From contig CP075492.1 of NCBI GenBank assembly GCA_021613535.1, positions 7,006,001 through 7,070,000 of the forward strand: a DNA stretch of 64,000 bases, read 5' to 3'. This DNA is from Adineta vaga. Its lineage: Eukaryota; Animalia; Rotifera. The position numbers and the translations under genes were made by a program. Under the pieces are notes generated by a model, which worked only from the letters and a program-made list of their open reading frames with translations, did no database searches and was not told where the DNA came from. This document shows, in pieces, positions 10,101-15,793 of the stretch. The stretch's first letter is position 1. Every line of letters begins with the position of its first letter.

Positions 10101-13100
10101 CTAAACATTATCACTTCTCATGAATGTTTTATAAAATGGCACAGAGATATTTGTGGGATAATATTTATAAACCATGTAAAATATCATCAGTAAAACAATA
10201 TTTTGAAGACCGTAATAGATAAATTTACACATAAGAGTATTTTGTTTAAGATATTGAATAATAGGATGTAAGCCTTCTTCACTATGAGTTTCAAATGGAT
10301 TATAATCGTTTCCGAAATACCATTTCATGAAACGATAATAAATACGAATTGGTGTGAAGAAACGTTGCAATGTATTTGGTGACACTCCATAACTAAATAT
10401 AGTGAAAGAATTATTAAGTAGAAGTCAATTCGAATGAGACTGATATCGTCATAGAAAAAACTATATGAAGTATACCTGTCAGAAAAAACCGATGTTGATA
10501 TATTATTAACAAATAAAGAACCACTCATGGTCAGTGGCGAAAAGAAACCAAGACGAGAAGCAGTTGTAATGTTTTTGATTGCTACTTTTCGATTAAATAC
10601 AATTAGATGATGCTTTATGGTTACTTTAGATGCGCGTAAAAATTTGATTTGATTAGTTTTCGGATCATAAATAGGGATATTATGAGTTTTTGTAAGACTA
10701 ATTTCATTTCCATCGATGGTTTCGATTGTATAAAACATATCTGAAATATCAAAAGAAAATCAACCGTAACTGAATCATATGATCAGTGATACTGACCTGA
10801 TTGATATGGTTCGTTGTGCATCATTAAAATAATTTCATCTTCAATGAATGAATTTTCATCTATATTGAGTGACCAAACTCGATCTCCGACTTTTAATTTT
10901 TCAATATAACGTTGTCCACCCTCAACGAGATTTATTTTATCTTTCCCATAATAACATCCACCACCTAAAATAGAAGACAAATATTCTCCATAACACATTC
11001 TACTAATCAAGATATATAAAGATATTTTGCATATGGATATAATGACATTAGTATGTAGTTTGATTAAAATTATTATATACCTGCTTGTTTTCCACAATCT
11101 GGTCCAGTCCATCCCCGTGGACAAGCGCATCCACCTGGAGTTACACAGACGCCACCATTTTTACATCCTTGGTTACAAACAGCTGAAATATTGAATTTAA
11201 CAAAATATATTGCTTTTCAAAGTAGTGTTATATAATGAAAAGGATTACGTACGCTGTGTGCAATCGTTCCCTTTCCATCCTGTCGGACATATACAGGTTC
11301 TACTACTCGAGCATGTACCTCCATTTGAACATACTGGACTACAAATAGCTAAAACATAAAAAAATTAACGTTTGGTAAAACTTAAAGTCATTGTTTTCAA
11401 AGTTTTGATTACATACGCGATTTGCAATTTGATCCTGTCCATCCTGATGAACAAGAACAAACATCAGGACTTTGACATACTCCTCCATTTAGGCATGAAG
11501 TTGTGCAGATAGCTAAAATATAACACATAAGACTACGAAGACATTCAATGAAAGCTAGCAAATACTTAACTATAAGTTAATATTGTATTTACGCTCTTAT
11601 CATTCTTATGAATATTACTTACGTATTTCACAAGTGGATCCTGACCATCCTGACGGACAACTACAAACTCCAGGAGAAGTGCACACAGCTCCATTTCGGC
11701 ATTGAGCTTTGCAAACAGCTAAAATACAGAAGAACGATTTTTGTTTTGCACTATATCTTGACTAAATGAAATCATAACTTACGAGTTTTACAATCTGATC
11801 CACTCCAATCTGCTGTGCATTGACATACACCAGGACTTTGACATATTCCATTATTTGAACATTCAGGCAAACAGATCGCTAGAATCACAAAATATGAATA
11901 GACATTAAATAGAACTTGATTTCAGATTTTCTATGGCAATATTCCTTACCTATTGCGCAGTTTGGTTGCTTCCATCCTGTTGGACATGAACATACTTCTG
12001 GTGATACACATATACCGTTGTTCAAGCAGCCTTCCGAACAGATAGCTAAAAGTATTATATTACAACTATTTATCGAATATTATGAATAATTTACAACACA
12101 TGAAAAGGTTTCGATTCAAATTCGCATTCTTGATATACATTACGTACCAGTTTTGCAATCTGTCCTTTCCATCCTGTTGTACAAGTACAAACTCCAGGAC
12201 TTGAGCAAATACCATTTGAACAAGGTGTTGAACACACGGCTAAATAAGTTTATTGATTGAACAGAAAATAATGAAATAAAAACTGATCGTTTCGGTAAAA
12301 AATGATTCTGTACATACGTGTTGTACAATGTGAATCGGTCCAGCCAGATGTGCAGTTACAAACACCAGGACTTATGCATGAACCATTATTTTGACAGAGG
12401 GAAAAACAGACAGCTAGAAAGGAAAATACATATTTCACATAGACATATGGTCTTATGAATTGATTCCGAACAGATACATACGAATTGAACAATCTGATCC
12501 ACTCCATCCTGACATACAAGAACACTTGTTGGGAGCCGCACATGACCCATTATTCAAACATGGCGAAGTACAAATAGCTAAATTAGAAGAAATGCGATTT
12601 ACATGTGATATGCAGTTACCAAAACATATAGATAGAATTCATGAATTGTAAGTAGATATACTAACGGTTTGCACAGTCTGGTCCATTCCATCCTGAAGCA
12701 CAGGTACATGTATTCGGTGATGAACAAGTACCATTATTCAAGCATCCATTTGAGCAAACAGCTAAAAATAGTAAAAATCAATTAAGAACTAGAATCGTGT
12801 ACATTTCTGATTTATAAGCATTAATACATACGAGTTGAGCAGTCGGGACCATTCCATCCGGACGTACAAGTACAAACATTCGGTGAAGAACAAGTACCAT
12901 TATTCAGACATGGCTTTGAGCAAATAGCTAAAAGAGAAAAATATATTCACTCAGAACTTCTCATTCGTCTAACATTTATACATACGTTTTTGGCAACTTA
13001 CACCTTCCCATCCTGCTGTACAGTTACAAACTTCTGGATTTGAGCAAAAACCATTCGAGCAAGGTATTGAACATATTGCTAAAACAAGAAAAACGAAATA

Positions 13101-15793
13101 ATGTTAGTGCGTGTGATTATCTTAAATAGAAGAAAAGATCACAAAAACATCTCTGTTTACATACGTGTTGTACAATCTGAATCCATCCAATTCGATGTAC
13201 ATTTACAAACTCCCGGACTGACACATGAACCATTATTTTGGCATGATGGTAAACAGATAGCTATATAAGAAAAAATATGAATTTAAATAAACGCATAATA
13301 TTCAAAATTTATTCTAAATCTATGCGTACGAATTGAACAATCTGACCCGCTCCATCCTGAGATACAAGAACACTTGTTGGGAGCCGCACATGTACCATTA
13401 TTCGAACATGACGAAGCACAAATAGCTAAATTAGAAGAAATGTAGTTTACATGTGATATTCAGTTACTAAAACATATGGATAGAATTCATGAATTGTAAG
13501 AAGATATACTAACGGTTTGCACAGTCTGGTCCATTCCATCCTGAAGCACAGGTGCATGCATTCGGTGATGAACAAGTACCATTATTTAAGCATCCATTTG
13601 CGCAAACAGCTAAAAATAATAAAAATCAATTAAGAACTAGAACCATCTATATTTCTGATTTATAAGCATTAATACATACGAGTTGAGCAGTCGGGACCAT
13701 TCCATCCCGATGCACAAGTACAAACATTCGGTGAAGAACAAGTACCATTATTCAGACATGGGTTTGGGCAAGCAGCTAAAAGACAAAATTATACTCACTC
13801 GGTGTTCCTGTTTATCTAGGATCATTACGTACGTTTTTGGCAACCTGGACCTTCCCATCCTGCTGTGCAGTTACATACTCCTGGACTTGAGCAAAAGCCA
13901 TTGAAGCAAGGTATTGAACATATTGCTAAAACAAAAAAAAACGAAATAATGTTAGTGCGTGTGATTATCTTAAGTAGATGAAAAGATCACAAAAACATCT
14001 TTGTTTACATACGTGTTGTACAATCTGAATCCATCCAATTCGATGTACATTTACAAACTCCCGGACTGATGCACGAACCATTATTTTGACATGATGGTAA
14101 ACAGATAGCTAGATAATGAAAATACAGATTTTACATAGACATACGGTCTTCTGAATTGATTCTGGACAGATACGTACGAATTGAACAATCAGATCCAGTC
14201 CATCCTGTCATACAAGAACATTGATTAGGCGCTGAACATGATCCATTATTTAAACAGCGAGAACAAGTCGCTAAGATAAGAGAATAAATATATTACGTAA
14301 ATATATCATAATCCAATGAATAAAGCAGGAACAAAATATCTCTTCAATCCGCCAAACAAGTAGAATCAATAGTAGTGATTTGGAAAGCAATACTTACGTA
14401 TTGTACAATCTGAGCCATTCCAGCCTGTTCGACATGAGCATATTCCTTCAGAGGAACATGTAGCACCATTTGAACATTGAGGCCAACAGCTACCTAGAAT
14501 TACGGATGTAAAATATAAATTTGAACTATAATTCAATGAGAAATTAGTTGATGAGACAAAAAATAGAATGTGACCTCATTAGAAACGATATGTAACATAA
14601 CGAAAACCAATGGTTACGAAAACAAAATTTGATAGTTATTAAAAGGAACGGAAAAGAAATTGAAAAAAAAACACTAGGCTTCGTATTCTAATTGAAACTA
14701 ATTACCTGAAGAGATTCGTTGAAGTGAACAAAAACTCATTTGCATTTGCAATTTTTGACCATCCGCAAACATTATTTCAAAACTTATTTTAGTATGTAAA
14801 GTATCAATAGAATGTTGAATTTTATCATCAAATGTTTTTCGACAATCGACATCAGTACTCACCTGGATAATCAATTGATATTGTCATAACTAATAAATCA
14901 CCGTTTGTACCAGGATCTTTTTGACAGTAAATATCATCAATTCTAAAATATTAAAATAAGATTTTCATAGATTACTATTGAACAAGAACAAATTGGTAGG
15001 CATACTTACAGTGCTTGTCGTTTTTGAGCACCGCTTGTCACTAACGATGGAATTAGTTTAACATTCACAACAACAATATTTGGTAAATCGATCGATTTCA
15101 TTAGCTGAAGAAAATCATTCATAAGCTCTACAGAATAAAAATCAAATGTTATTTACATTATTTGCTACATTTTTCAAATCGGAGATGTTCATCGCATGGT
15201 TCAACTTTGATTCGTTCCATAGACAAGATAATATGATGTCGAAGCTACACGATATTCATATGAATAGCATGAAAACAAAGTACATCAAAAATATACTTAA
15301 TTGAATATTTGTAACACGCTGTGTCTTATTTGGAAGATATATTGTCATAAAAACAAAGAGAGCAAGCACTCCTATTATACCCAGTGTAACCAATGGACAA
15401 CATATAGATACTTTTATTCTATATTTATAAACAATATTTCCCCATTTTCTAAACAAAAATCGAGAATATGAAAATAATTTCGAAAAAAAGATTAATTTTA
15501 CATATAAGTTTATCATCAAATACTGTGCAAGTATGGCTTATTGTAACTGTCTAGACTTACATACAATGGATAGTAATGTAATATGGTTGTAATCTTCTGC
15601 TTTTCTTTCTAATGATCTAAGGTCAGAGTGTTCCAGTCAACAAAACTTACAAAGTCGTTTCGTTAATATTTTAAAAGATATCTTTTTAGAAATAGTATTT
15701 TATAACTCACCGAAAAAAATTTTGCTCATTACCATCTTGATCGGTTGATACTTCAAGAAGATTACTCGTTGATCTCCAGAACACACTTGGCAT
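10101..15793 (-). CDS. EGF-hog: N-terminal TM + stalk + 20 EGF repeats + Hedgehog-type Hog (Hint/SRR) autoprocessing domain; this copy has frame anomalies
   Basis: ATG at 15793; [26 protein letters not shown]; 20 phase-1 exons each encoding C-x2/3-C-x-N-x-G-x-C-x5-C-x-C-x2-GW-x-G-x2-C (14493 down to 11081); then GGG|[40 protein letters not shown], and SRR-like FFTPIR...EGLHP. Confidence 0.85.
12148..14270 (-). repeat. ~848-bp tandem duplication unit (5 EGF exons + introns), about 2.5 copies
   Basis: Matching exons recur at 848-bp spacing (14178/13330/12482; 13925/13077). Several introns are near-identical between units (e.g. gaaataatgttagtgcgtgtgattatctta...gaaaagatcacaaaaacatct at ~13095 and ~13943). 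Confidence 0.9.

Follow-up and report, generated by a model that had tools for sequence, protein, structure and literature searches.

A transcribed gene of the rotifer Adineta vaga joins a predicted membrane-anchored array of EGF repeats to a Hedgehog-type Hog domain

Introduction

To our knowledge, covalent attachment of cholesterol has so far been established for Hedgehog ligands only. Hog domains readily gain new N-termini in nematodes, cnidarians and protists, cargos rich in Thr among them, and whether nematode and other non-Hedgehog Hogs add cholesterol is still unclear (Burglin, 2008; PMC2362128). Rotifers are not mentioned in that survey, nor is an array of EGF repeats described there as a cargo, and no published description of rotifer Hog genes or of an EGF–Hint architecture was found in full-text literature searches. 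The DNA analysed here, called the window throughout, is a stretch of 64,000 nt from the bdelloid rotifer Adineta vaga (GenBank assembly GCA_021613535.1, contig CP075492.1, positions 7,006,001 to 7,070,000 of the forward strand). An earlier note, made from the sequence alone, had proposed that positions 10101–15793 of the window encode a membrane-anchored rod of 20 EGF repeats fused to a Hedgehog-type autoprocessing (Hog) domain, and this gene is the subject of the present analysis.

Two residues of the Hedgehog C-terminal domain are needed for the comparison. Replacement of the general-base Asp by Ala (D303A) blocks cholesterol transfer and not thioester formation, whereas its replacement by His (D303H) retains structure, pKa and cholesterolysis activity and accepts a wider range of sterols (review PMC9163320). 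The Cys of motif J is replaced by Ser, Thr or Asp in the Hog domains of mosses and red algae (PMC2362128).

Results

The minus strand of the window carries, between 15516 (possibly 15793) and 10101, a single, real and transcribed rotifer gene. It encodes, in this order, a transmembrane (TM) helix, a Cys-containing stalk, 20 EGF repeats of one exon each and a Hint module (Pfam PF01079) that starts at GGG|C. By exon arithmetic, the corrected frame is open for 1093 or 1098 codons. The window is rich in AT (about 31% G+C) and the introns are short (about 55–130 nt), as in a small invertebrate genome. Pfam and structure searches were run exon by exon, and all scores given below are those of single exons.

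The Hint module is divided between Hint exon 1 (10797–10964), which holds the codon of the nucleophilic Cys (10956–10954), block A and the general-base position, and Hint exon 2 (10476–10740), with the TxxH motif, block F and motif J. Both exons matched PF01079, the first over profile positions 11–63 (30.8 bits, E 2.8e-7) and the second over positions 67–161 (48.7 bits, E 8.9e-13); the two matches are collinear and pass the curated cut-off of 29.7 bits. At the junction (...DCGKQAG GG|CYYG) the last EGF exon ends with DCGKQA plus one base, and Hint exon 1 completes GGG and continues with CYYG, so that the Hint module begins, right after the cargo, with the nucleophilic Cys; GG|CYYG aligns on GG|CFPG of human SHH (7E2I). 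Hint exon 2 could be aligned across 83 residues with 1AT0 and 6TYY (residues 56–144), its LTKTH falling on VTPAH. Block F is also kept, and the first Cys (C1), TxxH and block F all align to the C-domains of Drosophila and human Hedgehog. The top PDB matches of Hint exon 2, designed Kelch-like 'SAKe' repeat proteins, were set aside as spurious, because they sum six weak repeats with an i-E-value of about 180 each.

The catalytic set is Hedgehog-like in part: C1 and TxxH are kept, whereas the motif-J Cys is Val and the general-base Asp (D303/D46) is replaced by His, LMMHNE aligning on LFMHRN of 6TYY, the D303H form of the Drosophila Hedgehog C-domain. This natural His form at the D303 position mirrors the engineered 'general base swap' D303H.

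Transcription was followed in public sequence runs, four of which, out of 17 listed, were aligned to the 5,693 bases of the locus. Three of them (X1 and X3, 2024; X5, 2013) are probably RNA and were taken as such because their contigs skip predicted introns with GT..AG ends, whereas the contigs of X7 (2013), a DNA run, do not. The joint 10964|11081, which links EGF20 to Hint exon 1, was found in all three RNA runs, from two studies, with 65–67 nt on its shorter side and with the phase kept. About 12 junctions besides this one were confirmed by RNA contigs with GT..AG ends; the other RNA joints include 10392|10476, 10740|10797, 11182|11253, 11348|11417, 11718|11783, 12239|12318, 13609|13680 and 14270|14398. 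A single RNA contig covers the TM exon, the stalk and EGF1, and no one contig covers the entire gene.

Two groups of apparent splice signals were rejected. The joints 10352>10817 and 10358>10819 and the loose ends at 10330 and 10845 are also present in DNA and reflect cross-mapping of paralogous Hog genes, and spliced-leader trans-splicing at 15449 was discarded, as the RNA contigs have no loose end there.

These results bear out the core of the earlier note. The TM-anchored EGF array fused to a Hog domain stands, with Pfam matches to Hint on two collinear exons and to EGF families on the repeats; the Hint profile is matched above its cut-off by both exons, and the joint 10964|11081 places the EGF and Hint exons on one transcript and not on separate ones. 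The G|C junction with its Cys codon, LTKTH, block F and the terminal hydrophobic segment are present as it had described them, as are, by hydropathy and sequence reading, the TM helix and the QKRQA site.

The EGF array occupies 11081–14493, as delimited by a scan for the Cys pattern, exon borders, Pfam matches and RNA joints. Nineteen intact exons of 93, 96 or 102 nt encode one six-Cys EGF each; their introns are in phase 1 and their AG/GT borders are clean. In the remaining one (EGF14, 12148–12239) the sixth Cys is absent as written in the window, where the exon has 92 nt, compared with 93 nt and an intact repeat in the reads. The number of 20 repeats proposed earlier is thus recovered as 19 intact exons plus one that is intact in the reads and frame-broken in the window; for the mRNA, the count is 20 or 15, as explained below. 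The best Pfam models for the repeats were EGF_2, EGF_Teneurin and EGF_PEAR1L, and EGF_2 was above cut-off in all three intact repeats scanned; the broken EGF14 gave only EGF matches below cut-off, the best being EGF_PEAR1L (E 3.9e-4). The proposed likeness to repeats of the WIF1/Shifted/VWDE type was not specifically reproduced by these matches. A calcium-binding motif was found in none of the 20 repeats, which are non-calcium-binding EGFs of the tenascin/teneurin type.

Within the array, five consecutive EGF exons form a block that occurs twice in tandem (12414–14108; EGF3–7 and EGF8–12, 848 + 847 bp) with 90% nucleotide identity, introns included. As the period of 848 lies above the limit of Tandem Repeats Finder, the duplication was measured by pairwise alignment. 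The array has grown by segmental duplication of exon blocks. Because of this duplication, 20 and 15 expressed EGFs cannot be told apart from the contigs, and it also explains the ambiguous RNA 'joints' of 934–936 nt. RNA joints that skip 934–936 nt or go back by 790 nt were accordingly not accepted as exon skipping or as a 15-EGF isoform, as the flanking 47–92 nt are identical between the duplicated blocks and the copy is unassignable. Inside the duplicated region, RNA contig depth is about 0 over 12761–12950.

Potential glycosylation sites were also noted in the repeats. Twelve of the 20 EGFs contain the pattern C2-x4-[S/T]-C3, the consensus at which POFUT1 adds O-fucose to EGFs of the Notch type. 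Taken together, the exons of the array also hold 14 N-x-S/T sequons, most of which overlap this site.

Upstream of the array, the TM exon (15297–15516) is certainly coding from 15448, and RNA contigs cover 15297–15457 of it and splice at 15297. Its best 19-residue window has a mean Kyte–Doolittle hydropathy of 2.66 and is preceded by basic residues, which fits a type II signal anchor and would place the EGF array and the Hog domain on the lumenal side. The stalk, of about 140 residues, is encoded by stalk exon 1 (15010–15127, with ...SGAQKRQA..., covered by RNA contigs according to depth arithmetic) and the Cys-containing stalk exon 2 (14706–14942, with one RNA contig across 14703–14942), neither of which matched a Pfam family. 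The bare dibasic site in QKRQA is, by its presence, a candidate for cleavage at KR.

The last exon (10101–10392) encodes a region like the adduct recognition region (ARR) or sterol recognition region (SRR) of Hog proteins, with ...EGLHP, followed by a hydrophobic C-terminal segment and the stop codon. Its set of motifs (P-I-R, YY, W-x-F/Y-G, NPF, GLHP) and the terminal hydrophobic stretch are conserved in seven rotifer Hogs, and a stretch of 56 residues shares 57% identity with the Hog tail of P0012, another protein of Adineta vaga. The Pfam Hint match reaches into the equivalent part of the tail in P0012 and in P0015. The last exon alone gave no direct Pfam or PDB match, and a profile of the ARR-like tails, compared with solved structures, retrieved no Hedgehog chain and only a designed TM helix (E 2.6). 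The SRR-like tail (FFTPIR...EGLHP) that had been described is therefore present and conserved among these rotifer Hogs, but a direct match to the SRR of Hedgehog was not obtained. The terminal hydrophobic stretch is moderate (mean hydropathy 1.63). With this conserved segment behind the Hog domain, it is the uncleaved precursor, and not the product alone, that would be held in the membrane at both ends; a product in the form of a 'rod anchored at both ends' would follow only if a lipid is added.

The letters of the window differ from the reads at three sites, each of which disrupts the frame. At 12162/12163 one nt is lacking, with loss of the sixth Cys of EGF14; the RNA reads GGA TCA GAT TGC AAA ACT G here, and the 2013 DNA contig has an extra base at 12162. 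Two nt are missing near 14856–14859 in stalk exon 2, an insertion found in the DNA run as well as in each of the three RNA runs; as written, this stalk exon has a stop in every frame exactly at the indel, and with the two nt restored it reads ...IDYPGECTDVDCRK... The third site lies in an extra small exon (15180–15244; 65 nt in the window, 66 nt in RNA), in which one nt missing at 15209 creates a stop, RNA differences being seen at 15208/15209. The three indels are either errors of the assembly consensus or belong to a broken allele on the assembled haplotype, and the expressed form is intact. The extra exon is covered by RNA and is skipped when the TM exon is spliced directly to the stalk, a join that also keeps phase 1. 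The intron between the extra exon and stalk exon 1 (15128–15179) would start with AT, not GT, in the window letters; this may reflect a non-canonical intron, a slip in the alignment or one more site at which the assembly and the expressed allele differ.

As to the 5′ end, the first coding exon proposed earlier (15711–15793; ATG at 15793, 27 codons plus 2 nt) has a good GT donor at 15710–15709 and is in frame with the TM exon, and RNA contig depth is 0 over 15611–15793, which includes it. The RNA contigs reach 15457, 9 nt past the proposed acceptor, and the two mismatches in those 9 nt would fit the end of the proposed exon, a weak sign in its favour. The alternative start is the contiguous ATG at 15516. 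The exon model put forward before is hence upheld at most junctions by RNA, and departs from the present one in the three frameshifts of the window, the extra exon of 65/66 nt, which it apparently omits, and a first exon without RNA depth.

To place the gene among its relatives, the six chromosome-scale pieces of the genome (100.8 Mb) were searched, with 54 exon-level Pfam Hint matches at no fewer than 35 separate loci (for example C1:11662054, C2:8144748 and C5:10371728). The Hedge domain (HH_signal, PF01085) had no match in a six-frame search of the genome, a kind of search that does not prove absence. Many Hog genes without a detectable true Hedgehog suggest a situation like that of nematodes. 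The nearest paralogue in the genome is 60% identical in Hint exon 2 and has three EGF exons directly upstream. EGF repeats of a Notch/Delta-like kind, with longer C3–C4 loops, lie at L001 8184–9926 (plus strand; C2:15885183–15886925), on the opposite strand a few kb from the Hog paralogue with three EGFs, and probably belong to a separate gene.

Hint exon 2 gave 75 matches against 1.8 billion representative proteins, and the named ones that were looked up are all from bdelloids (Adineta steineri, A. ricciae, A. vaga and Rotaria socialis) and are unnamed products. The annotated rotifer relatives carry as cargo FG-GAP repeats with one EGF, Thr-rich mucin-like stalks, two EGF-like modules, or nothing recognised; more than two EGFs were present in none of the annotated Hog proteins retrieved, and two length-windowed word searches (queries P0016 and P0090) found no multi-EGF Hog protein of 600–1900 residues. 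Two to three EGF exons are found on ENA contigs that carry a 68% homologue. When a single exon was used as the query, a metagenome scan gave no match; with an alignment as the query, the JGI/ENA metagenomes yielded 60 loci, many of them with 9, 11, 15 or 19–20 one-exon EGFs directly upstream of the Hint exons. These loci are rotifer-like, with exons of about 96 nt, introns of about 50 nt and a G+C content of 33–39%, and one of them (L046) has a TM helix and a Thr-rich stalk ahead of 20 EGFs. The gene of the window is therefore one member of a large bdelloid EGF–Hog family that is already present, unnamed, in public sequence data. Of the claim that it represents an undescribed system, this leaves the part that no paper on it was found, against a large family in public data and a one-EGF version in UniProt.

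In a tree of the 87-residue exon, a short alignment with modest support for deep branches, the gene pairs with L010 (support 97/89). This nearest relative has SGG|CYHG at the junction, and at least four EGFs lie in its short upstream stretch. The tree separates all EGF-bearing loci from the EGF-free ones, which include the Thr-rich P0012 and P0015, each group occupying one half; the exception is P0037, a long-branch Rotaria protein with two EGF-like modules. The general-base residue is His in most relatives and Asp in L019/L026, L028 and P0002 (one-residue shift), and the residue before the Cys is G, K, S, E or A. Two loci, L024 and L033, have an identical Hint exon 2 and lie about 12 kb apart on the metagenome contig Ga0209914_1000208, one with 11 upstream EGF exons and the other with none within 10 kb, which suggests a recent duplication with gain or loss of cargo.

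Discussion

The best overall explanation of these results, to which we assign a probability of about one half, is that the gene expresses a TM-anchored EGF rod fused to a Hog domain that cleaves itself, with the thioester resolved, in the reading favoured here, by a hydroxyl-bearing lipid. From N- to C-terminus, the protein would consist of a short cytosolic tail, the type II signal anchor, the stalk, the rod of 20 EGFs, the Hog domain and the C-terminal hydrophobic segment. In the lumen of the endoplasmic reticulum (ER), the first Hint Cys, placed after Gly-Gly-Gly, would attack the peptide bond before it, with the help of TxxH, in an N-to-S acyl shift, and resolution of the thioester would then free the EGF ectodomain from the membrane-held Hog fragment. 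If a sterol-like hydroxyl lipid resolved it, the EGF rod would carry a TM anchor at its N-terminus and a lipid at its C-terminus. This kind of resolution is favoured because most relatives have His or Asp as the general base and because conservation extends to the adduct-recognition region. Self-cleavage, predicted by analogy with the established mechanism of Hedgehog and inteins, is probable; the predicted lipid adduct is put forward more tentatively, at somewhat less than even chances. The protein may have a role in signalling or adhesion.

Several findings weigh against this explanation. Here the motif-J Cys (SCYA; C400/C143) is Val, TSVF(S) aligning on ASCY, and a recent report describes this Cys of Hedgehog as forming a branched intermediate (PMC12054796). 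The general-base position is Tyr or Gln in some rotifer relatives. The homology of the last exon to the SRR of Hedgehog would hold by transitivity only, through the rotifer paralogues, and the activity of rotifer Hogs is predicted from their sequence. As to the gene model, the mRNA may have 20 or 15 EGFs, the short-read contigs fitting both; the window carries its three frame-breaking indels relative to all RNA contigs and to the 2013 DNA contigs (X7); and the 5′ end has two candidate ATGs, at 15793 (spliced) and 15516 (contiguous).

Because the motif-J Cys is missing and Tyr and Gln occur at the general-base position, a self-cleavage without lipid stays alive as an explanation, although we consider it rather unlikely. 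The Hog domain and its C-terminal anchor would then form a self-removing ER tether or quality-control module, and hydrolysis by water would release a type II EGF-array surface protein with a free C-terminus. A general base that is not fixed in the family (H, D, Y, Q), the variable residue before the Cys and the doubt about cholesterol addition by nematode Hogs (PMC2362128) agree with such a module, but simple hydrolysis would need neither the strong conservation of the ARR-like region nor the predominance of His and Asp at the general-base site. The two departures from the Hedgehog catalytic set (D303 to H and C400 to V), together with the hydrophobic segments at both ends of the protein, could also mean that the Hog domain is catalytically dead and structural, the whole protein forming a hairpin that has its two ends in the membrane and exposes the EGF array as one large loop outside the cell. 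This is improbable, given that the nucleophilic Cys, TxxH and block F are kept both here and throughout the family, that D303H is active in Drosophila Hedgehog (PMC9163320) and that Hogs of mosses and red algae lack the motif-J Cys as well (PMC2362128).

Other alternatives concern the locus and not the chemistry. If the three frameshifts were real, the copy in the window would be a decaying allele or pseudogene and the other haplotype alone would make the protein; besides the indels themselves, this would agree with RNA contigs that are non-reference at all seven listed variant sites of the last exon, at the first four of which the DNA contigs show both bases. Nevertheless, the only DNA contig seen (X7, 2013) is intact at all three indel sites, and three independent indels amid otherwise clean exons look more like consensus errors, so that a decaying copy is quite unlikely; even in that case, the gene as such would be intact and expressed. 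Finally, the lack of a contig that covers the entire gene would allow for two adjoining genes, an EGF array and a small Hog, wrongly merged into one. RNA contigs of three runs pass in phase from EGF20 into Hint exon 1, with GT..AG ends and 65–67 nt on the shorter side, and the same EGF/Hog adjacency recurs in many other genomes, which makes such a merger extremely improbable.

Returning to the self-cleaving EGF–Hog protein, its relevance goes beyond a single gene. Whether the many non-Hedgehog Hogs of nematodes, cnidarians and protists transfer lipid is a long-standing question, and the EGF–Hog family offers a tractable case, with a well-understood and easily tagged cargo, a clean Gly-Cys site, a natural His/Asp general base and a conserved membrane segment after the Hog domain. 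The natural His/Asp variation matches an engineered Hedgehog variant of broader sterol range. It is conceivable, although on balance doubtful, that bdelloids apply the lipid-transfer chemistry of Hedgehog to a whole family of TM EGF-array proteins, giving a rod pinned by a sterol ester and a TM helix or, after proteolysis of the stalk, a sterol-tethered EGF ligand. If so, no animal protein family outside Hedgehog would have been found to be modified by a sterol before this one, which would moreover have a natural His/Asp 'general base swap'. Rotifers would also be, besides nematodes, a second animal lineage with a large Hog expansion and no detectable Hedge domain, which bears on how Hog domains acquire their cargos.

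Among the known systems, Hedgehog (Hh/Shh) shares with the rotifer protein the entry into the secretory pathway and a C-terminal Hint domain that has TxxH, block F and the G|C cleavage site and leads into an SRR-like region with P-x-R, WY and LHP, and the matches to PF01079 and to PDB entries 1AT0, 6TYY and 7E2I are significant. It differs in that the rotifer gene has no Hedge domain (PF01085) and carries a TM-anchored EGF array as cargo, with His as the general base, Val at the motif-J Cys and an extra hydrophobic segment after the Hog domain. The warthog, groundhog and quahog proteins of nematodes and other Hogs with novel N-termini (PMC2362128) are alike in their lineage-specific expansion, in unrelated N-terminal cargos, in an animal seemingly without a true Hedgehog and in an adduct-recognition region unlike the SRR of Hedgehog; the Hogs with Thr-rich stalks, T-hog and Hoglet, resemble the rotifer relatives P0012, P0015 and L046. 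The rotifer cargo, in contrast, is unrelated in sequence to the Wart, Ground and Qua domains and consists of a widespread module, the EGF, in long arrays, and at the N-terminus of the protein there is a membrane anchor in place of a cleaved signal peptide, with a hydrophobic segment at the C-terminus in addition.

The closest annotated relative found is an 'EGF-like domain-containing protein' of Adineta steineri (P0002; A0A814JAY6/CAF1035788.1), with 59% identity in Hint exon 2. It has the same order of TM helix, Thr-rich stalk, an EGF of the C-x3-C-xNGGxC type before CYYG, Hog domain, ARR-like tail and hydrophobic C-terminus, but differs in having a single EGF and not 20, N-terminal FG-GAP repeats, Lys before the Cys and Asp, with a shift of one residue, at the general-base site. 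Hedgling, the Hedge–VWA–cadherin–EGF–TM protein of cnidarians and sponges (Burglin, 2008), is likewise a large protein of the membrane in which EGF repeats are combined with a module derived from Hedgehog, and is the mirror case, as it has Hedge without Hog and the rotifer protein Hog without Hedge. Tenascins, teneurins and MEGF/PEAR1 have in common with the rotifer protein only the type of repeat, EGFs of 31–32 residues without calcium-binding motifs in long arrays, and have no Hint/Hog domain. Therefore, the principle of a Hog domain with a novel N-terminus is known, whereas the EGF-array cargo, the predicted precursor held in the membrane at both ends, the natural alternation of His and Asp and the size of the rotifer expansion are, as far as we found, undescribed.

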